Below the pieces are notes generated by a model. That model ran no database searches and was not told the origin of the DNA. It saw nothing but the letters and a program-made list of their open reading frames with translations. A stretch of 64,000 bases of DNA. Source: Guillardia theta CCMP2712 (Eukaryota > Protista > Cryptophyta). The position numbers were made by a program, and so were the translations under genes. This document shows positions 1 through 63,060 of the stretch, one piece after another (positions within the stretch are counted from its first letter, which is position 1; each line of letters begins with the position of its first letter). The stretch spans positions 13,190 to 77,189 of the forward strand of contig NW_005434506.1 in the NCBI RefSeq assembly GCF_000315625.1, given 5' to 3'.

Positions 1-5193
<5,193 letters not shown>

Positions 5194-9034: not shown

Positions 9035-9892
9035 TCAATCAGAAGTCCAGCAACCCGCAAGTGAAATCTGGTCTTCCTGATCGTAAAGGAAATTCGTATT
9101 CGCGCCTTCTCGTGTAGCACTGGGAAAGAAATCTACACCTTCTACATTCAAGGCGTCCTCGATTGTTACCTCACTCAACTGATCGAACCATTGATCCTGC
9201 TCTTCGCTATTCCACGAGAGTTCAGAAAAGCGCGGCTGCTGGCAGCTTGAACCGCTGGTGAATTCCTCGACCACACTAGGCAAGGTATCTGATCCGTGAG
9301 GAAGTATGCTATGAAAATCGTCTAAACTCGCGCCTGTGACACTTGAGTTTCTGTCTTCCAGCACAGCTTGCGCTGGTGTATTCGTGAGCTCCAACCAGAT
9401 GGTGTTTTCATTTTCTTCAGGCTGAATGTCTCCAGCTCCGTGTTGCTGAGTTCGCACCTCAGCAGATCTGTTTGACTTGGCACTCTGCCCCCACGAGCTG
9501 TGCGAGACGAGCTGCTGGCTGTTGCTTGAGGGATGTCGCATGAGCACCTGCCTTGTCTTCGAATCCTTCGTGTAAGGCCACCGGCCTATGCCCAGCTTGC
9601 GACAAGCGATCTTGAAGCTCGTTAAGGAGACTCCCTGAGCGCCCCACGTCAGTGCGACCAGAGACAGCGACAGAGACAGAGACAGAGAAGATAGAGAAAG
9701 AGAGAAAATAAGAGAGCTTACCAGCATGTTTGCTGCTACGTCTTGCCGGAAACGAAAAAGTTCTTGCAGGACGCCCTGACTGAGGACCACCGGCCTGTCT
9801 TTGCGGATGAGCCCAGTCTTGGTCCGTGTCTCAATAATCACTGAATCTGTGGGAGCCTGGATGCGAGCATGGGTTTGCTTGCCTTGCGCCAT
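9035..9892 (-). CDS. RWP-RK domain transcription factor (one 87-nt in-frame intron, 9635-9721)
   Basis: After removing the GTAAG...CTCAG intron: VVLSQGVLQELFRFRQDVAANML-GVSLTSFKIACRKLGIGRWPYTK, an RWP-RK signature, followed by an acidic tail. Confidence 0.9.
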   Translation of the reverse strand: MAQGKQTHARIQAPTDSVIIETRTKTGLIRKDRPVVLSQGVLQELFRFRQDVAANMLVSSLIFSLSLSSLSLSLSLSLVALTWGAQGVSLTSFKIACRKLGIGRWPYTKDSKTRQVLMRHPSSNSQQLVSHSSWGQSAKSNRSAEVRTQQHGAGDIQPEENENTIWLELTNTPAQAVLEDRNSSVTGASLDDFHSILPHGSDTLPSVVEEFTSGSSCQQPRFSELSWNSEEQDQWFDQLSEVTIEDALNVEGVDFFPSATREGANTNFLYDQEDQISLAGCWTSD

Positions 9893-22858: not shown

Positions 22859-24994
22859 TCAATCAGGTGGCAGTCACTGACCGGTGACTGGAGCCGCCGG
22901 CTCGGCGGCGCGGCCTCTTGACCCATCACTCCGAGGCTCGCCGGGTGGGCCCGTGCGAGTGCGCTGGCAGACTCGGACATTGTTCTAAAACATGGCTATT
23001 CAAAGTGAGTTTAAAATAGTTCTAACACATTGGGATTTTTAAATTATCGAACAACTATTTTTTCGATTATCAAAATAGTTTTAAACTGTTTATGCGGACT
23101 GCAATCTTGCTACTATCTCAGAGCAATTTCGAGATCTCCCACTTGACTTAGTTTGAAAAGACTTAATTTGGATCCAAATCTGCTGACATCTCACCCCGCT
23201 AAAACTATTTTAGAATACTATTCAAAACCCTGAGGCCTCCGACTCAGTCCATCAGACATTAAGGTCCCCACCGGTCCAATTGGACCCCGTCTCCTTTCAC
23301 AATCAGGATCCCCGCCACAAACATGAGTCACCTTCAAGATCTCGTTTTCTGTAAATGTACACATAATAAATTCATTAACCTGCTGACATTCGATGAAATA
23401 CCACTACCCCCTTAATCAAGTACCCCTTTGTTTGACGGGAAACAGTACCCCACCCCTAGTTCCCAGGCTTATTTTAGATCGTCTCTGTGATTGTTCTTCA
23501 GAGCTGCCTAGGGCGTATTTTCAGGAACGGACCCCACCCCTTGACACACTTCTTAGAACTACCCCCATTTCCATCTAGTTTGAGAGAAACTGGTGGGTGG
23601 TACACAAGGGAATTCTTCATGGGTGTAGGGTGGGGTTTTCTGAGTGGTACGGTTGTCCGAATCGATTGCGGAAGGTATAGGGGTACTCCGACTAGACGGG
23701 AGATGGAGGGAGGGAATCGAAGGGGTAGTCAAGTCTGTGGAGGGGTGATGGGGGCAGTCCAAGATTCGAAGGAAGGGTCATAGGGAGAAAGGGGGTGGGA
23801 GAAGCAACAGAAAGGGGTGGGGTAAAGGGGTGATATATCACAAGGGGGGAGATACAAAAGGAGATCGCCAGGAGATCAAAGATTAATTGAAAGTACGTCG
23901 TTTCAAGTTAAGATCGGCGATCTTGTTTAAAATCTCTTTTACTTCCTTAAGCATACCCTACCCCAGTCATGAGCATACAACTGTCTACAAAATTTGACCA
24001 AGAGAGGTCCCGAATACGGGTAGACCCCACCCCTTTTGATTCAAACATTATCCCAACCTTTAAATTCAAAGTCTCCAACATAAATCTATTGTTCAAATTG
24101 GAATTATGTGAGAAAGGCCTAAAAAAGAAGTGAATACTTCTTAATGGATTGGGAAGACCCCCACCTACTGCAATCCTTTAAGTATACCCCTGCAAAACCA
24201 ACCCACCCCCTGTTTTAACCTCATTCGCACGAAACCCCCCTCCCCCACCCAGACATCTCCCTTCATCTCTTCCTGAGATCCAACCCCCCCGATGCTTTAT
24301 AAATGAACCCGGGGAAAGCGACACGATGGGGAGAGAAGCAGAGGAGGAGGAGATGTATGACTGTCAGGGAAAGATGGAGGAACGAAGACAGGAAGATCAG
24401 AGAGACGAGGCTGGGCAGATGGAGGCGTTCACAGCATTGAAGAGGAAGGTAGCGGAACAGAATCGCGATGTCAGCCTACGAAGATGTAAGGAGGCTACAA
24501 GAGCAGATCAGGATAGAGGTTCAAGACGAAAGGGCAGACAAAAGATGAATGTTGGAGATTGAGTGAGAAAGGGGAGCGGAGCAAGTCAGGATGGGCAGCA
24601 GACGGAAATGTTGCGCAGGGTATAAGCAGGGCAGGTTGAAAGAAGAGAATAAAACGACGCGCACATCAAGAGCGGATTGAGTTGGAAAAGAACAGTGTGA
24701 ACAGATGAAAGGAGGGTGATGTAGATAGAGCCGCATAAAGATGTCAAAAACGAGAAGTCTAGTTGATAGAAAATAGAGATCCGATCCTATTCGGTATTAA
24801 GGCGAGGATGTGCATCTTTACAGTGAAAGAGAACACCATTGAGATCTGAGGGGTGTAGGGGGATCACACATGACTTGTATCACGCAAAGATGGTATATTG
24901 GTTGCTTCAGAGTTTGACCTTTGTCCACAGATCATCTAGAGTTACAAGCAAAGGAAAAAGCGAAAGAATACCTTCCCCGCTCTTCGTCTACGTC

Positions 24995-25672
24995 ATGGAC
25001 GGAGACAAACACAGCGCAGAAATGCCTCTACTCCTCAACAACTCTCTACAGCCATCTATGTGCAGCCCACGCTTCCACCCACTGTCTACTCTGCCTTTCA
25101 ACATCCACGGGCTGACCTTGCAAGGGTTTGAGGGCTCGGGCTTTGCGGCCTCTCAGATGGCGATGCTCCTTGCTCCCCACGATGACTCGGTGAGGTCAAT
25201 CTTAGCGAAGCGCAAGCTGGAGAAGGATGAGACGGAGACAGAGGACAGCGACAAGTCATCTTCCAAGAGCGGCGATGACCATGAGACAGACAGGGCGAAG
25301 TTAAGGCGGCTCGCGTTCCAGCACGAGGAGCTGAAGACGAGGCTGGCGGAGTCAGAGTGCGAGCTGGACAGGCTGCGGGTTGTTGTGGCTGATCTGCTGG
25401 AGGAGAACAAGAAAGATAAGCATGAGGAAAGCATGAAACAGGACGTGCCCAGGAGATACTGGCTCCAGGAGGAGCACGACAAGTTCCTAGAGGCTCTGCG
25501 CATGTACGGCCCTAAGGCCATGAAGGCGATCTCGGACCACGTGAGGACGAGGACGCCGGTACAAGTGCGGACACACGCTCAGAAATACTTTCAGAAGCTC
25601 GCAAGGATCTCGACACAAGGTGGACAGACGAGCGGGTCGTCGTCAGACACGTTGGACGACATTGCTATCTAA
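24995..25672 (+). CDS. Myb-related SHAQKYF-class transcription factor with upstream coiled coil
   Basis: RRYWLQEEHDKFLEALRMYGPKAMKAISDHVRTRTPVQVRTHAQKYFQKL; heptad segment HEELKTRLAESECELDRLRVVVADLLEENK; a short intron near 25060-25124 is possible. Confidence 0.92.
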   Translation: MDGDKHSAEMPLLLNNSLQPSMCSPRFHPLSTLPFNIHGLTLQGFEGSGFAASQMAMLLAPHDDSVRSILAKRKLEKDETETEDSDKSSSKSGDDHETDRAKLRRLAFQHEELKTRLAESECELDRLRVVVADLLEENKKDKHEESMKQDVPRRYWLQEEHDKFLEALRMYGPKAMKAISDHVRTRTPVQVRTHAQKYFQKLARISTQGGQTSGSSSDTLDDIAI

Positions 25673-30513: not shown

Positions 30514-30642
30514 GGCCGCTGGGCTGCGGCAGTGAGCCGGCGCCGGGCCCGCCGAGTTCCAGTTCTTCCGGTTCCGAGCCTCTGCCACGGTGGCCAGTGT
30601 CTGCCACGGCGCGCAGCGTCAGCACGTGATATCGGACCGTCA

Positions 30643-30942
<300 letters not shown>

Positions 30943-31245
30943 TCACAGTCACAGTGTTGCTCAGCCCTCACAACAGAGTCAGTGAAGCAGTCGCACTGTA
31001 CTGACGTCAGTGCAGCCCCGTGGCGCTGAACGGTTTTTGGATTTTTAAGTTCAAAAAGTTTAGAAAATTCAGTCGGCTGCTGAGGTTGGTCACGGTTGAT
31101 CCCACGTACAATCAGCGGCTCACGGGCCCGCCGGTCCAGCGGTGTGATGGGGGGCAAAATACAGTAGACCTAGTCAGGCTGAGCGGCATGACCGTCAGTC
31201 AGTGACCGTCGCCGACTGAGTCAGTCACGGTGCCGCATTGAGCCT

Positions 31246-33093
31246 TCAACCGGCCGCGGAGTCCCAGGTCGCCGCATACTCTTCAATTCTTGCTACGGCG
31301 TCTTGCATGGTCAATCGATCTCCGGGGTTGTCGAATATGCAATCTTGTGCAAGTCGCTTGAAGAACTTGGCATCTTCTTGATACTCGATCAGATAATGGA
31401 GACCGGACCGCGAATCAAGCAAAGTGCAGCCGAAGCTGTATACATCGCAGGCAGAGCCGTAAGGTAGCCCCTTGCAAATCTCTGGCGCGATGAAACCGTT
31501 TGTCCCTACCAATGTCATTGCCTGTTGGTCGCTGGACAGCAATCGGGCCTCGCCGAAGTCCGAGAGTTTGACAACCCCGTTCTTCTTCACCAGCACATTG
31601 GCGGGTTTGACGTCTCGGTGGATCACGCCCATCCCGTGAACATGACGGATGGCCCGGGCAAGAGCTCCGACAGACCTGATCGGGTCCTTCCAGAAGATGT
31701 CTTGACCGCTGGGACCCATGCCGCTTCCCTGGTGCGCCAACGTGAAATCGAAATGCTCGAGGATGAGGAACTCATCACGGACATAACCTGTCACCTCCAG
31801 TACTCCGAAGAGAATCACCACGTTTTCGTGCTGGCACTTGTGGAGCAGGTGTCCTTCATGCCTGAGCTTGTTGGCCAGGATCGTATCGGCCGACCGCTTC
31901 AACGCGTACGTCCCCGGGGCCTTACCGTCAACAAGCAACTTTGCTTTGAAGACCCGGGCCGACCCTCCGGAAGCAAGTGAGTCAAAGGGCTTTTGCACCA
32001 CACAGTCGTCATTGAAAATCTTGATCTTCTCAACTTCCTCGCATTCCACTTCAAGAATTTGCAGCTGCTCATCGCAGATGTGGTGGATATCAGCTTCACA
32101 CTCCTTCTCATCGATCAGCTTCTGTTTCATCATCTTCGTCGAACTGTTCTTCAACGTATGCTTCAACATGAGCGCGCGCTCCAGAGCATCTCTGGTGAAC
32201 GTCGCAAGGTTGGACCCCACGTCTTGAATTACCTGGGTAGACATAGAAAATAGATCATGCCTCGCACACCACGTGAGGGAATGAGCTGCCTTGGAGAGAT
32301 TACATTCTTCATGAGTAGGCAACATGTTGCCAATGATGTCGTTCTTCTCTGGGTCTTGGCAGAAAGCCAGTACATGATCCGCATGCCATCGAAGTTCGGG
32401 ATCAATATGGCAGTTGCACAGATAACAAGTACCATTAGCGTTTTCCCAGATATACTTCCTTTGCTTCTTGGTGAGGTGTCGCCTAACGCGGATTTTCCGT
32501 ACAGAGTCTGAAAGGAGGATGGTCACCCAGCAAGGCCATTCTTCTTCGTCTCTCTCCTTAATTCGTTCTCCAAGTTCTGTTGCAACTCCCGAAAGCAACT
32601 GTTCCTTGCTGCCCTGGAGAAGTACACCGCGGCCGTTCTGGCAGGCTTGCCTATTGATTTTATGGAATTTTATGAAATCCTTTTTCAAGTCTTCCGTGTC
32701 ATATCGATGTCCAAGAAATTCTTGGAGGTATTCACTTCCTTTGACTTTCAAGAGGTGGATACACTGATCTATGACACTCAGATGAGGCCGACTTTCATGT
32801 TTGCAATTGCACTGCCTCTCCGTTTTTGTCTCGGTACGGTTGTTTTTCTTGCTCAGGCAGTAGAAGCAGCAGTAACAACAGAGCAATGAACACAGCTCAC
32901 AATTCTTGGTTAAATCTTTGCTTTGTTTTCGCATCTGCTTCTTCTTCACCTCTCGTATTTCATCTTGTCCTTCTTGTCCCTTGTTGTTCTTGTACCTCTC
33001 TTCGTGTCCAGCATCTCCTGCCCCTTCACTCCCAATCATTTCAGGGGTTTCTTCCTTCTCTTCCTTCTCCGCATCTCGACCGCTGTCGCGCAT
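31246..33093 (-). CDS. HNH endonuclease - Ser/Thr protein kinase fusion (615-aa uninterrupted ORF)
   Basis: HNH (about 32281-32485): RRHLTKKQRKYIWENANGTCYLCNCHIDPELRWHADHV..NDIIGNMLPTHEECNLSK. Kinase (about 31270-31990): LASGGSARVFK, YALK, HRDVKPAN, DFG, GTNGFIAPE, DVYSFG. Confidence 0.9.
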   Translation of the reverse strand: MRDSGRDAEKEEKEETPEMIGSEGAGDAGHEERYKNNKGQEGQDEIREVKKKQMRKQSKDLTKNCELCSLLCCYCCFYCLSKKNNRTETKTERQCNCKHESRPHLSVIDQCIHLLKVKGSEYLQEFLGHRYDTEDLKKDFIKFHKINRQACQNGRGVLLQGSKEQLLSGVATELGERIKERDEEEWPCWVTILLSDSVRKIRVRRHLTKKQRKYIWENANGTCYLCNCHIDPELRWHADHVLAFCQDPEKNDIIGNMLPTHEECNLSKAAHSLTWCARHDLFSMSTQVIQDVGSNLATFTRDALERALMLKHTLKNSSTKMMKQKLIDEKECEADIHHICDEQLQILEVECEEVEKIKIFNDDCVVQKPFDSLASGGSARVFKAKLLVDGKAPGTYALKRSADTILANKLRHEGHLLHKCQHENVVILFGVLEVTGYVRDEFLILEHFDFTLAHQGSGMGPSGQDIFWKDPIRSVGALARAIRHVHGMGVIHRDVKPANVLVKKNGVVKLSDFGEARLLSSDQQAMTLVGTNGFIAPEICKGLPYGSACDVYSFGCTLLDSRSGLHYLIEYQEDAKFFKRLAQDCIFDNPGDRLTMQDAVARIEEYAATWDSAAG

Positions 33094-33699
33094 GCCCGAT
33101 CTGGTCGATTATCCATCAGTTTCGAGGATTGATACTGAAATACCCCCAGTACCCCCCAGTGTACCCCTGAAGTTTGATCACCCCAACTTGCTCAATTGAT
33201 GACCCCACCCTTGTAGGTGAACTTTCATTGATTCCTCTGCACTACCCCACCGCTCAGATGGGTAGGAGTTTTATTAATCGGATTGTAAAAATAACTCAAA
33301 CTGAGATGCCAGTACTTTGTATGGTGAAGAGAAGGCGGGGCACCTGTACACCCCACCCCGAGATTCTGCAGAAACTGTGCTGAGAAGTACCCTCCCCCCC
33401 CCCCCCCCATCCCGGGTGCTATTGTTTAGTTATTGGTTTAGCTCAGAGGTCCACCATTTTTACCTTAACTTTGAGTAAAAAGATCTGTTCAGACAGAACA
33501 CAAGAGGTAGAGTAGAGCCAAGGAAGATTGACGTGCAAATGAGGAAGCGAAATGAGGCATAAGGCCGAGAGATACGCGGAGAGTTCTTGAGGAGGGCGGG
33601 TTTGGGCTTGTAGTACAGCAGCGGCTATGGCGTAGTGCTGGCTACTTGCAATGATGGTTCGAGGGTGTTCGTACAGCAAAGACGTTACGCACAGTGAAA

Positions 33700-34860
33700 G
33701 ACACAGAGGTCAATACCTCCATCTTCTGGGATCCAAGAAGGTAAGGCAACCAATACCTCCGCACTAACGCCAAATTGAACTTTCATTCTGTTGTCTGTTT
33801 TGATCGATAGCTTGCGGCTCCTTGTGCAAGTTGATTTCGTTATAACACTTCCATCATGACGCTGAGTTTTTGCTTTTCTCGCTTCTACAAATCAAATCCC
33901 CAATCACCATCTGCCTTGTTGCGCTCTGGTCTTCAAAAAAGTTGAATAAACTACTTCATGCAAGGTGATGGTGAGAGTGAGCAAGACATGCGAGGAGATC
34001 GAACAAGACGTCTCCCTCTTGCTGTCCAGATTTCATACTGTTGTTGGACTTGACGCGGAATAGTGTTCGGGTAAACATGGTTGGTGTGTCGGTCTTACAG
34101 GTATTGATCCTCTTCGTACTGCACTGTGCTGTTGTTCTCTCACACACGTCCAAGCTCTCTTGTGAAGATGTCGCCCTCGTCATTCAGCTGGGAAGAGCGA
34201 TGAAAAGCTGCAGGTCGCCTCAACTCCCCAGGCTTCGAAAGTTGCTGGACGATGCCAGCATCGTCAAAGTTGGGATCAACATCTTTCATGTGAGTACTGG
34301 TCGCTACTGCATCAATAGACTCATTGGTAAACGATCATGACGTTGTCTTGCTCTTCTTTCCCGTGGACAGGATGCCGATAGGTTGGAGGCGTTGGTTGGC
34401 ATCAAGACGAGGTTGGAAAATGGACGACTTTGTCACAAAGCAAATGGCATACTGCCTTTGAAAACGTAAGGTCCATGTTAGACCTGCGATATCTGAGCTC
34501 CGTTCATCACATCGATGCATTCGGGTTGAAGGTCACTCATTTGTTACTCGGGCTAGCGTGATTGTTTGTGCCTTCAGTCTCTTGCCAAACACAGCAGGAG
34601 ATTGCTCTGCTCTACACTGGTCGCATCCAAGCTTGCGATGGGGACGGAGCAGTTTGCATCCTGCCTCCACTCCCCCTGAGTTGTTGGACCCTCCGTTTGG
34701 TGAGGACAAGAGAGGAAGGAGAGCGAAGAAACGCTCGAGCTCGTGCAGAGAGGAGGAGGAGAGGAAGAGGATGTCACACAAGTGTAAAGCTTCGATGCTT
34801 GCAACAAGACAAACAAGCTTGTATCACAACTGCATGCTGCTGGTGCGACACACGAGACGA
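33700..34860 (+). pseudogene. WRN/DnaQ-type (DEDDy) 3'-5' exonuclease, disrupted by a stop and a frameshift
   Basis: TVVGLDAE then TAG (34061-34063); in the +1 frame GVSVLQ / LSCEDVALVIQL..LPRLRKLLDDASIVKVGINIFH / DADRLEALVGIK. Boundaries approximate. Confidence 0.65.
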
Positions 34861-58959: not shown

Positions 58960-61900
58960 CAATGATGATGACGATGACGATGATGATGACGAAGATAGCG
59001 TGATGGTGATTGATTGTCAACTTTACAGACTCTGTGATGACATGATGCTCAACTCGCAGATGACAAGGCGAGACTTGGAAGCAATAACAAGACTCCAACT
59101 TGACATTATAGCAATGATCGAGCAAGACAAGGGACTACAACAGCAGCAGATCGCGCAACAACGGCATTTCAATCGCAAGGGCAACAACGGCAACTCACAG
59201 TCATGGCTTGAAAGTTCGATGAGTGAGTACGTCGAGGAGGACTCGTGCTACATGTCAGCCGTACAGTCGTTGAACTCGTCTCAGTGGTTCCCGGCGAGGT
59301 CAGGGGGGATGAAGGAGGAGGAGGGGAGGCTAGTGAGGGAGACTTCGTCCTCCTCATCCAGAGATTCGGATAAAGATATCTTCAGGATCGTTTGCGAGGA
59401 TGAAGTAGAGGCTGTTCCCTTGCGAGCAAGAGTTTTGTTTGATGAGGTGAGGAGATGCATGACTTCATTCTCTTCTTCCTTGGTGCTGAGTGTTCTCGTT
59501 TCTACTAGTTTCTTTTGCTTTTCCTTTTCGTTTCTCTTCTTTTCGTTTCTTTTTGTTTCATGTCTATCTGTTTCCTGACCTTGTTTGCCTTTGACTCTTC
59601 TTCTTTTCCCTCCCTTCAGGTTTCTCTCAAGCTCGACGACATCGTCTTGAGCATGGAGCGGGCAAACCTGCACGCTCTGTTCAAATCCAAGAGATCACAA
59701 GACACCCAGGACAGCAGCGCGGGAGCAGCAGCAGCAGTAGACACCATCTGGCTACACACCTCAAGGGTCTGCGCTTCCTTGCAGGAGGACTGTTTCCTTG
59801 GACCGTTGCAGGACGTTAGCGAAGAGTTTCGTCCGAGCTCGAGCGCGATGCGAGCTCGCGGCTGCCATGCGGAGCCTGTGGAGGAGAGCAAGACGAGCTC
59901 CTCAGTGTTCTTCAAGTTGACCAGAACGTCGGAGCTCGCACACAAGGAGCATGCAAGCATCTCGTTCACTGCAAGGTGCTGCGGACTTGTCTTTGTCACC
60001 GACATCCTCCAACGGCTGGAACTCCTGGACCCGCTGTTGAAGTCGCTCTCCGAGATGTGGCAAGTTGGCGGAGCGACCAGGGGAAGCAAGCAAGGCCACA
60101 ACACACCTCCTCCTCTTCCTCCTCCTCCTCCTCCTCCTTCTTTACAGTCGCTGCAAGCAAACATCGACGTGCTGGATACTTGCGTCCTTGCTATCTCCCA
60201 TGCACAGAATGCGAACGATACAGCGTCCAAGATGGAGGAGGAGGTGGTGGAGGAGGAGGAGGACGAAGAGGAGGAAGAGATTCTAGGAAGCAGGAAAAGG
60301 ATTCGACTCATGACCATTGTGTCAAGGGTTTCCCTCGATTTCTCCTCCTCCCCCCAAGTTCAGCCTGCCAGGGCCCGGCAGGTTGAGAGCAAGTCAGAGG
60401 AGGTCAAAGTGAAGTTGATATGCCATTCTGATATCGTTCATGTCTTTCTCCTTAACCCCCCTCCACCTGCTCCCCATGCTGCAACCTGCATGCGAGAAAT
60501 CGTCGATTACATGCGCGATTGCGGTATGCCCTTGCCCCTGCCTATGCTCCTCTCTTGCTCTTGCCCTCCTGCTCCATCCCCTGCTCCTACTTCTCCTTCT
60601 AATGTTCCTGCTCCTGCTCCTGCTCGTCCCCCTCCTCTTCCATCTCCTCTTCCGCTTCTCCTCTTCCAAGCATCTAACGTTGTCATGCAGGGCACATCGA
60701 GTTGCTTCACATGTCTTCGTTTCATCTCGATCTCTCGCAAGAGAACAGCAGGGTCACTGTCTGCTTCCTCTCCCTTCCTCGCCGCTGACCTCCCGTCACA
60801 GGTTGATCTCGTTGCCAGTGGCCCTGATGTACAGGTGAGCAGAGGAGCTTCACGCTCCACCTCCCTCCTCCTTCTCCCTCCCTCCCTCCCTCACTCCCTC
60901 CCTCCTCCTTCTCCCTCCCTCCCTCCCTCCCTCCCTCCCTTCCTCCATATTTCTCTCTTTCCGTCCTCATCCTCATCTTCATCCTCATCCTCATCCTCAT
61001 CCTCATCCTCATCCTCGCTCTCCCTCTAGGTCTCACCTTGTCCTCTACTTGTCTAGCTCAGCGGCTGACTTCCTCTCAGTTCGGGGCGTGTGTTGACAGT
61101 CTCAACTCGCTCCTGCTCTTCTCTCAGTCTCCTCTCGTCACGCACTTGCTCTCCTTCAAGTCTCCTCCTTCTGAGCAAGACAGTGGGAGGAAAGTCAGCA
61201 GGGCGAGAAGGATGGAGGCCCAGCAAGAGGAGGAGGAGGAGGAAGACTGGGAGCCCATCCACACGGGGGATGTCGAGGAGAGGATGCTCCGCGAAAGCGT
61301 TGTGAAGCTGTTCTCCTCCTCCTCCTCCCCCCGCCGCAGCCTCCCCTACGACATGGAGGAGGATCACTTCAACAGGGCAAACCTGCGCAGCAGAAGAAGA
61401 GAGAGGAGGGAGAGGAGGGAGAGGAAGCAGCAAGTGAACGTGCTCCTGAGAGACGTTCACGTCTGCCTGCGCCTGTTTGGAGGGGAGGACCTCAGGCATC
61501 GGGGAGAGGCAGGGAGGACGGAGCGAGGAGCGAAGCGAGAGCAGCACCTGCTCATGGCGGAGCTCGGGGACGACGTGGTATCAGTTTCCTCTTGCTCTGG
61601 AAGGAGGAGCGAGAGTCTGGCGCAAGAGAGCTGGAGGCTGAGGGGAGGGAGGGGAAGGCAGGAGGATCGATGGATCGAAGTGTACATGCAGCAGGGCTCT
61701 CTGCAGCTCTCGTCGAGCAAGAGCGGCGGGGCAGGAGAGCAGGAGAAGGAGGATGGGGAAGAGGATGAGTTCAGCTGTCTGCTGACGCTGCACCACCTGG
61801 AGGTATCGGACGGTCTGTTCAAGCCAGCAGCAGGAAGCTCGTCGGAGTTCTCCCTCCTTCTCCACCAGGTTGAGCGTGCAGACGCTTCCAGCAGCGCCAT

Positions 61901-63060
61901 TAGGCATTCCCATGCTCTTCGAGTTGCATTGCGGCAGACTAGCGCCAAGGAGGAGGGAAGGAGGAGGAGAGGAGGACCAGGACCAGGACCAGGAACAGGA
62001 AGGAGGACGTGCGTGACAGTCTCTGCCTGCCCGATGCAGGTCAATCTTCATGAAGTCACGGCAGTCTTCATCATCAAGCTCGTCGAGGCCTTCGAGCAGG
62101 AGAGAGGAATCGCCGCCTCCGCCTCCTCCTCTGAGCTCGACCAAGATTTTGTCAGGGTGGACCTTGACGACTCACATGTCGTGATCGAACGGGGAGGAGG
62201 AGGAGGAGGAGGAGGAGGAGAGGGGCAGACGCTCTCCTTCTTCGTCATCCGCCCGTCCTACCTCAAGCTGAACCTCAAGAGGACGTACGAGGGGGAGCTG
62301 GAGGCGATGGAGACGGAGAAGCTGCTGGGAGGCTACACCGAGCGGCTCGTCAACCTTGTCATGCGCTACCTTGAGGGTCTTCCCGCCTTCTCCCTCCCCG
62401 GCATGCTCGTCGGCTGCGAGGGTGACTTGAGTTCATCCGACCTGCTCTCCCGCTACGCTCGCAGGTGTCAGAAGTCTCTCATCCAACAGTGCCTGGCCGG
62501 ACTCTACAACCGACTCAAGGTCCATCTCCTGCGCCCCCCCCCCTTTTCCTTCCTGCTGCTATTATTTTACTGTGTTTCCTTCACTTTCTCCCGATGTCTT
62601 GGTCCTGCCGCCCCCCCCCCCCGCCCCCTTCCTCCCCTCCTCCTCCTCCTCCTCATCTTCATCCTCACCCTCATCTTCCTGCTCTTGCTCTTGCTCTTGC
62701 TCTCCTCGTTCGTGCTCCGCCCAGTGTCTTTCTTTTCTTTCCCTTCCTTCTAAACTCACACAGCACGCAACAACTCAAATGCATCACTTTCATTCCTCCT
62801 CCTACCTCTCCTCCTTCTAGACTTCGTCCTCTTCCTCTTCCTCTTCCTCTTCCTCTTCCTCTTCCTCTTCCTCTTCCTCTTCCTCTTCCTCTTCCTCAAC
62901 TTTTTCCCAGGTTCCCATCCGAGGCGCATGCCATGGCTTCACTTCAGCTCTCGAGCGGCTGCTGGGGGACAGCAGGAAGCTCCGTGGGGTTCATCGTGGG
63001 CTGCTCTCCTGGTCCCGCGCCCTCGTTCATGCGGCGGCAGCCGCAGCCTCCTCCTCCTAA
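54605..63060 (+). CDS. ATG2: ATG2-like (VPS13/chorein-family lipid-transfer) protein, many exons
   Basis: N-terminus MIPSWIIERFSRSLLNKKLLR-DFLKTELEENQ..GLYLYDLDLRTDTLNATLP (Chorein_N-like); C-region QVNVLLRDVHVCLRLFGGEDL, PMQVNLHEVTAVFIIKL, FFVIRPSYLKLNLK, KLRGVHRGLLSWSRALV resemble ATG2 conserved blocks; includes a gap and local frameshifts. Confidence 0.62.
55015..55114. other. Assembly gap (100 N)
   Basis: Run of N. Confidence 1.
56963..57056. repeat. (CTG)n intronic microsatellite, about 31 units
   Basis: Follows the GTATCT donor in the ATG2-like gene. Confidence 0.93.

Follow-up and report, generated by a model that had tools for sequence, protein, structure and literature searches.

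The cryptophyte alga Guillardia theta CCMP2712 carries, in a 64,000-nucleotide stretch of its genome (RefSeq contig NW_005434506.1, positions 13,190 to 77,189; hereafter the window), an intronless gene whose predicted protein places an HNH nuclease domain ahead of a protein kinase. The complete coding sequence (31246..33093, minus strand) runs from ATG to stop as a 1,848-nucleotide open frame specifying 615 amino acids; an earlier reading of the bare DNA (the sequence-only reading) had described a single uninterrupted open reading frame (ORF) here, and both the ORF listing and colinear transcript contigs uphold it.

Reads and contigs were placed on 30960-34500 (3,541 letters), a region adjoining a microsatellite. 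A 2,052-nucleotide transcript contig from run X9 spans 31031-33081 with no gap or joint, and runs X4 and X12 also tile this span; 13 runs contain at least half of the words sampled from 31000-33400, and the colinear transcripts come from several independent studies. Because depth drops to zero across 33102-34500 in X9, X4 and X12, these runs are transcriptomic, not DNA, data. In a 2026 RNA run the raw reads form a 3'-biased pile-up at 30960-31554, with the first mate on the minus strand. The HNH domain and the kinase are carried on one unspliced mRNA, the contig over 31031-33081 crossing the linker between them and neither splicing out the HNH half nor stopping before it. The locus is shown to hold a genuine nuclear gene of this eukaryotic alga, one that is transcribed and has no introns.

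Transcript contigs end at 30993, 31031 and 31075, delimiting a 3' untranslated region (UTR) of about 170-250 nucleotides (30993..31245, minus strand) without a genomic poly(A) tract. Assembled transcripts begin at 33081-33088, a few bases inside the first ATG, so that translation starts either at M1, behind a very short leader lost in assembly, or at M19 (33037-33039), the paralogue C120a (described below) likewise beginning MRD; both domains are translated from either start. A long microsatellite (30590-30950) lies just downstream of the 3' UTR and reads, depending on frame, as (His)n, (Pro-Ala-Ser)n or (Asp-Ala-Gly)n.

Domain architecture of the protein

Residues 186-295 (32209..32538; this and all segments below lie on the minus strand) are assigned, from profile, homologues and predicted fold, to a beta-hairpin followed by an HNH domain of the beta-beta-alpha-Me, zinc-finger type. 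A HMMER search of residues 95-345 against 1.84 billion representatives returned 165 matches at an E-value (E) of 1e-3 or below, 53 of them at 1e-10 or below, and all align over query positions ~100-230, which correspond to the HNH region. Individually, 48 of 67 aligned homologues match the Pfam HNH family PF01844 (best 5.5e-15). A domain profile built from an alignment of 80 sequences (A3) matches solved HNH nucleases, led by 4h9d (E 6e-9), together with IscB/Cas9-type HNH domains, a group II intron maturase, ZRANB3 (E 7e-5) and McrA. In the AlphaFold model of residues 185-345, which has a predicted local distance difference test (pLDDT) score of 87, the beta-beta-alpha core is visible, and Foldseek ranks Cas9 HNH domains and Cap5, a CBASS effector, highest among PDB matches to this model (probability 0.92-1.00).

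The core motif (32290-32427) reads C223-x-x-C226 ... D239-H240 ... N256 ... H261-x-x-C264-N265-x-x-K268. Within it C223, C226, H240, N256, C264, N265 and K268 are each conserved in at least 90% of aligned sequences; considered by role, the D/E-H general base, the central Asn and the metal-binding Asn are 90-100% conserved over about 80 relatives (alignments A3 and A4), and the Zn ligands C223, C226, H261 and C264 are all present in the window protein. The domain therefore has the profile, the D/E-H, N and N residues, the Zn ligands and the fold of the HNH superfamily (PF01844). Taken together, the homologue matches, the family profile and the predicted fold establish the assignment: this is a genuine HNH domain, whose catalytic residues, as judged from sequence and model, are intact. 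The Zn-type HNH domain with catalytic His and Asn in place that the sequence-only reading had described is in this way borne out, an HNH profile match being found in those 48 homologues and, through the family profile, at E 6e-9.

The C-terminal half, residues 366-615 (31249..31998), is a Ser/Thr-type protein kinase by its matches to Pfam and to PDB kinases, with the catalytic residues all present. Pfam Pkinase (PF00069) covers residues 373-580 at 118.2 bits, against a cut-off of 31.7 (E 5.4e-34), and among solved structures the closest matches, at about E 1e-17, are to ordinary Ser/Thr kinases. K399, E413, H492-R493-D494, K496, N499, D512-F-G514, P537-E538, D550 and R593 are present, each conserved in at least 88% of 34 relatives with the same fusion; the domain thus combines a profile score above cut-off with the beta3 Lys, alphaC Glu, HRD, loop Asn, DFG and APE of a Hanks kinase, and the profile match and full residue set confirm the intact kinase that had been read from the sequence. 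With both active sites near-invariant across the family, both activities appear to be under selection.

Between the two domains, residues 296-365 (31999..32208) form a helical extension, specific to the family and conserved across its alignment, and a two-helix linker. The AlphaFold models place two long helices at 298-328 and 330-354, in agreement with the helical linker proposed earlier. For a homodimer of residues 185-615 the structure prediction reached 0.18 where the mark is 0.32, a score that bears on dimerisation in neither direction.

Confidence in the full-length model (pLDDT 75.8) is high over the HNH domain (~200-320) and the kinase, and the model renders the N-terminal 200 residues as helical or disordered. 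Residues 1-60 (32914..33093) are a charged, low-complexity N-terminus of low pLDDT with no evident signal peptide in the translation. They are followed by a Cys-rich hydrophobic patch at residues 64-82 (32848..32904), with seven Cys between C65 and C79, that the paralogues also keep. Kyte-Doolittle 19-residue maxima fall at this patch in the relatives C120a, C120b and P0002 (1.3-1.7); in the window protein the patch lies below the whole-protein maximum of 1.32, which falls in the kinase. Too short for a classical transmembrane helix and of borderline hydropathy, the Cys-rich stretch is possibly an S-acylated membrane anchor, to judge from its composition. Residues 95-185 (32539..32811), modelled as helices at low confidence and without a recognised function, are common mainly to the paralogues; they are 56% identical to C120a and have no Pfam match.

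Paralogues, neighbouring genes and the wider family

A search of the 87.1-Mb assembly (669 contigs) found two further copies in tandem on contig C120, the pair C120a and C120b, as intronless open frames of 599 and 639 amino acids that share about 47% identity with the window protein. Comparisons of the window copy with the C120 copies are saturated at synonymous sites; between close copies, the ratio of non-synonymous to synonymous substitution (dN/dS) is 0.5-0.7 overall, with the HNH part the most constrained (0.36). A metagenome supplied P0002, closely related to the C120 copies. An apparent homologue at 54% identity, P0001 (JGI 3300017164), was rejected: it is a transcript-like contig derived from this organism's C120 paralogues and hence not an independent homologue. 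The transcript-like contig L002 of JGI 3300017164 (2,072 nucleotides) is a chimera, joining the E/K-rich N-terminal part of C120b to the body of C120a. If that sample is a metatranscriptome, the C120 copies are transcribed too.

Upstream of the HNH-kinase gene and divergent from it lies a multi-exon gene (33960..34850, plus strand), delimited by tblastn and blastn against its sole genomic counterpart, which stands directly upstream of C120a (C120:176626-177900, minus strand; locus L098). Exon blocks are 45-64% identical between the two loci, one block of 243 nucleotides reaching 73% at the DNA level, and from this correspondence the duplication is segmental, the HNH-kinase gene and its upstream neighbour having been copied together. 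In the window, the neighbour has TAG (34061-34063) in place of the Trp of 'VVGLDAEW' in the C120 copy, three codons before a GT splice donor common to both copies, and RNA depth is zero over 33935-34500, the part covered. With an in-frame TAG and no RNA over that interval, the window copy is a probable pseudogene relic. The neighbour's motifs resemble those of a DEDD 3'-5' exonuclease; this identity was left unsupported by a six-frame genome search with PF01612, by single-exon Pfam searches and by PDB searches. The window had been described as intron-dense, and a passing check agrees to the extent that this neighbouring conserved gene runs over several frames. Farther away are an RWP-RK ORF (9035-9892, minus strand), a Myb DNA-binding ORF (24839-25672, plus strand) and a weak ATG2-like match (61038-62753, plus strand).

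Acquisition of the gene by transfer or retroposition, as the sequence-only reading had proposed, finds no direct support. We found neither a poly(A) tract nor target-site duplication nor terminal repeats in its flanks, and its composition (GC 0.50; 0.59 at third codon positions) is close to that of its surroundings. Cellular genes lie on both sides of the gene, which stands alone and is not bordered by repeats; this is not the location of a homing endonuclease or mobile element. Nor does the family look prokaryotic or viral in the databases searched. The signature WH[IV]EH[VI]xAF occurs on one contig among 185,579 prokaryotic species genomes (GTDB), the 8-kb CAZEGK010000059.1 (L093) of an 'uncultured bacterium' metagenome-assembled genome, whose bacterial origin is doubtful and which may be eukaryotic contamination; a prokaryotic origin is accordingly unsupported. 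In IMG/VR, the family pattern picked out nothing but short phage-type HNH proteins of at most 39% identity, a search there with the single proteins P0039 and P0026 gave no match, and an origin in viruses or giant viruses likewise fails to gain support from these scans. An old horizontal or retro-origin stays possible, since the genes are intronless family-wide and their distribution is patchy.

On the L093 contig, positions 1961-4939 encode a 992-residue ORF with HNH, kinase and a C-terminal region of about 550 residues containing a P-loop-like 'GKS' and a 'DLPG' motif, possibly dynamin-like.

Among 151 representatives, which are clusters at 50% identity, the HNH motif is followed by an HRDxKxxN catalytic loop in at least 34, and the reverse order occurs in none. 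The two motifs are about 240-300 residues apart in most of these, and Pfam adds fused members with variant loops (P0003, P0058, P0064 and the L093 ORF). Named sources are Mallomonas annulata (a chrysophyte), Mylnosiga fluctuans (a choanoflagellate), Sexangularia sp. (an amoebozoan) and an MMETSP transcript: a patchy distribution over distant protist groups, with few named taxa. Pairwise identities of the HNH and kinase domains are correlated (r 0.78), a value reached in none of 2000 Mantel permutations, and a quick maximum-likelihood tree places every one of the 34 fused kinases on one side relative to 40 other kinases, with one long-branch intruder, a support of 81 in the Shimodaira-Hasegawa-like approximate likelihood ratio test (SH-aLRT) and a small outgroup sample. 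As the two domains co-vary and the fused kinases cluster, the comparison fits one ancient HNH-kinase fusion inherited as a unit.

Other searches reached less far. The N-terminal region retrieved two matches only, one from the same organism; the HNH region of P0033 retrieved three proteins; and a protein search with alignment A1 was swamped by ordinary kinases and is uninformative for distribution. The closest non-fused HNH look-alikes are bacterial and phage proteins.

Two metagenomic contigs with family members carry typically eukaryotic genes split by the gene caller (one contig has KBP_C, LMBR1, CNNM and a mitochondrial carrier, the second TTL), and on both the HNH-kinase gene is a single ORF. 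Three further members lie on gene-dense contigs of GC 0.54-0.64: L010 (JGI 3300056827, 280 kb), L007 (JGI 3300056825, 56 kb) and L009 (SRR24319187). The surrounding ORFs there have almost no Pfam domains, or ankyrin, PARP, AAA, DUF285 and RING domains; a giant-virus-like nature or a compact protist source could account for these contigs, and IMG/VR yielded no relatives. In two proteins of 600-610 amino acids, P0025 and P0163 (the latter on a 102-kb contig), the same HNH subfamily stands mid-protein with no kinase and no other recognisable domain bar a weak ABC_N match (0.007), which may represent an alternative fusion partner.

Candidate function and its alternatives

Coupling of a nuclease to a kinase recurs in immunity and stress responses, in RNase L, IRE1 and the Crinkler effectors that join a restriction endonuclease (REase) to a kinase. 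IRE1 and RNase L pair a kinase or pseudokinase with a KEN ribonuclease that is activated in stress or antiviral responses by nucleotide binding, phosphorylation or dimerisation. The window protein would share their logic, a kinase-fold domain switching a fused nuclease, but whereas the KEN domain acts on RNA and is C-terminal to the kinase, the HNH domain is N-terminal and presumably acts on DNA. Pfam detects in the window protein neither a KEN domain, the chain ending 35 residues past the Pkinase match (residue 580), nor a luminal or ankyrin/2-5A sensor domain.

Prokaryotic systems supply each half separately. The HNH domains of CBASS Cap5, Septu PtuB, Cas9/IscB and the nickase 4h9d have the same CxxC...CxxC finger, D/E-H base and N...N residues as the window HNH, and in Cap5, PtuB and Cas9 the domain is a signal-gated effector, controlled by SAVED and cyclic nucleotides, by ATPase partners or by a guide RNA; unlike the window protein, Cap5, PtuB, Cas9 and 4h9d have no Hanks-type kinase fused to them. 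Septu PtuB models are matched by the homologue P0006 only (6.6e-7), no PtuA ATPase partner is found at the locus, and the larger neighbouring ORFs have no ATPase match in Pfam. Conversely, Hanks kinases serve as defence components in prokaryotic antiphage systems, and the window kinase matches the models of the antiphage kinases PD-T4-6, MAD6 of MADS, PglW of BREX and Stk2, which have no HNH. The PADLOC matches (mad6 1.3e-37, PD-T4-6 9e-28) cover the generic kinase core only, and the NCBIfam equivalog for MAD6 scores 62.8 bits against a cut-off of 460. We rejected membership in the PADLOC and NCBIfam defence-kinase families on scores so far below their cut-offs, and read these matches as generic homology, because any Hanks kinase would score so.

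The Crinkler effectors offer the nearest eukaryotic precedent. In their REase-kinase members, on the published view, toxicity resides in the nuclease and is regulated by the kinase (PMC5289972), and REase-kinase and HNH-like CRN13-type proteins are scattered in protists and free-living eukaryotes (PMC5289972, PMC12957317). Like CRN8 of Phytophthora infestans, the window protein places a DNA nuclease and a eukaryotic-type kinase on one polypeptide, and like CRN13 it has an HNH-type module; CRN8-type proteins, by contrast, use a PD-(D/E)xK REase rather than HNH. The ubiquitin-like Crinkler header and its LxLFLAK motif are absent, only kinase Pfam families being matched over the whole length at E<=1, and with no header, LxLFLAK or signal peptide the protein is not a secreted or translocated effector by Crinkler criteria. 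Of the Crinkler comparison drawn in the sequence-only reading, then, the analogy of nuclease-kinase coupling stands and the defining N-terminal header is missing. The window protein is neither a Crinkler effector nor a relative of IRE1 or RNase L, nor, by its location, a homing endonuclease.

To judge from its architecture, the protein is most likely a kinase-controlled nuclease, and our tentative preference is for a DNase under kinase regulation that serves in biological conflict or in cell death. The sequence-only reading had likewise proposed a DNase gated by phosphorylation or oligomerisation for defence or suicide, which the architecture makes plausible. The HNH domain would be the effector, a metal-dependent DNA nickase or DNase, with a basic RRR..R segment before the CxxC (R204, R212) probably contacting DNA, and the kinase would be regulator or sensor. 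As an HNH domain has a single active site, two copies are needed for double-strand cleavage; autophosphorylation or kinase-driven dimerisation through the helical linker could pair two of them, or the kinase might instead release an autoinhibited HNH domain, so that DNA would be cut only on signal. The most plausible setting would be restriction of viral or mobile DNA, or cell suicide triggered by infection or stress. We lean towards a role in conflict or cell death because the distribution is patchy, the family has expanded locally and evolves fairly fast, and its genes are intronless.

Several observations weigh against this proposal. Taken by itself, the HNH segment scores only 12.3 bits against the PF01844 cut-off of 21.4, and reaches Endonuclease_7 at E 0.016. 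The third Zn ligand, Cys in most relatives, is His in the window protein, its paralogues and P0031, the only point where the window motif differs from the family consensus. Expression in ordinary transcriptomes, with a well-covered contig, would be dangerous if the protein were a toxin without a gate, and tight autoinhibition must therefore be assumed. No partner or immunity gene and no known trigger supports the mechanism, and the window neighbours are ordinary nuclear genes with no defence-island signature. Finally, the elevated dN/dS between young paralogues could equally mean relaxed constraint.

Some of the same facts would suit an enzyme of DNA damage or replication stress, in which the HNH domain, as in ZRANB3, would cut particular DNA structures or sense them, and the kinase would have repair or chromatin proteins at the site of damage as its substrates. 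Such a lineage-specific maintenance factor would explain expression in ordinary cultures, ordinary nuclear genes as neighbours, purifying selection on the HNH domain and the profile matches to the ZRANB3 HNH (E 7e-5) and to small nicking-type HNH enzymes. We nonetheless consider it unlikely: the distribution is patchy and not universal, with few named taxa, the gene has expanded in tandem into several copies with a fairly high dN/dS, Pfam detects no PCNA-, ubiquitin- or DNA-repair-type accessory domain, and a Cys-rich patch suggestive of membrane attachment would be odd in a chromatin enzyme.

Rather less probable again is a kinase tethered to DNA or chromatin, with HNH kept as a zinc-finger binder of nucleic acid that cleaves little or not at all, and phosphorylation the only output. 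HNH folds are treble-clef zinc fingers and often binding modules (PMC4999995); the HNH-like motif of AeCRN13 is required for DNA binding (PMC5289972); and the window protein has its better-conserved Pfam match in the kinase. The retention of the catalytic D/E-H, central N and metal-binding N at 90-100% in some 80 relatives speaks against a purely structural HNH domain, because structure alone would need just the Zn ligands.

We give a similarly low probability to a gene of a mobile element or large DNA virus, spreading horizontally among protists as a domesticated or selfish nuclease-kinase that manipulates its host. Several features are consistent with it: the gene is intronless beside genes that the caller splits, both in the genome and on metagenomic contigs, the family is patchily distributed, three members (L010, L007 and L009) sit on long, gene-dense, ORFan- or ankyrin-rich contigs that are possibly giant-virus-like, and the nearest non-fused look-alikes of the HNH domain are bacterial and phage. 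Against these stand flanks with no terminal repeats, target-site duplications or poly(A), a host-like composition among cellular neighbours, the lack of any family member in IMG/VR by family pattern or by two single proteins, and a paralogue duplication that was segmental and took a flanking host gene along. That the ORF is non-functional, or an artefact of annotation or assembly, is scarcely credible, the sub-threshold HNH score of the single sequence being the sole point for it, set against a 1,848-nucleotide open frame, colinear transcripts in several independent studies, two intact paralogues and the catalytic residues kept.

The kinase-regulated DNase could be taken further, to a self-contained, single-protein effector of innate immunity or suicide, in which the kinase would detect infection or damage, autophosphorylate or dimerise, and set the HNH DNase loose on viral or cellular DNA, the product of one ancient fusion kept patchily in cryptophytes, chrysophytes, choanoflagellates and amoebozoans. 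We regard this extended form as speculative and, on balance, improbable; if true, the protein would be a eukaryotic counterpart of the abortive-infection HNH effectors Cap5 and PtuB and a DNA-cutting analogue of RNase L.

Searching full-text literature for HNH-kinase fusions, we found no description or functional study, although the Crinkler survey of Zhang et al. (2016) may mention the architecture, and no characterised housekeeping orthologue turned up in the homologue or literature searches. Database labels are limited to 'serine/threonine protein kinase/5-methylcytosine-specific restriction endonuclease McrA' for one cluster member and 'Protein kinase domain-containing protein' for another. 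The window gene therefore represents a conserved, apparently undescribed protist family joining an HNH DNase-type domain to a kinase, one that spans at least four distant eukaryotic groups, including choanoflagellates, the nearest relatives of animals. Should it prove to be a repair enzyme or chromatin kinase instead, it would be a lineage-specific curiosity. The antiviral defences of protists are poorly known, and if the kinase gates the nuclease, the family would offer an accessible model for DNA-level defence or programmed death in these organisms, and might serve as a compact, switchable nuclease scaffold.

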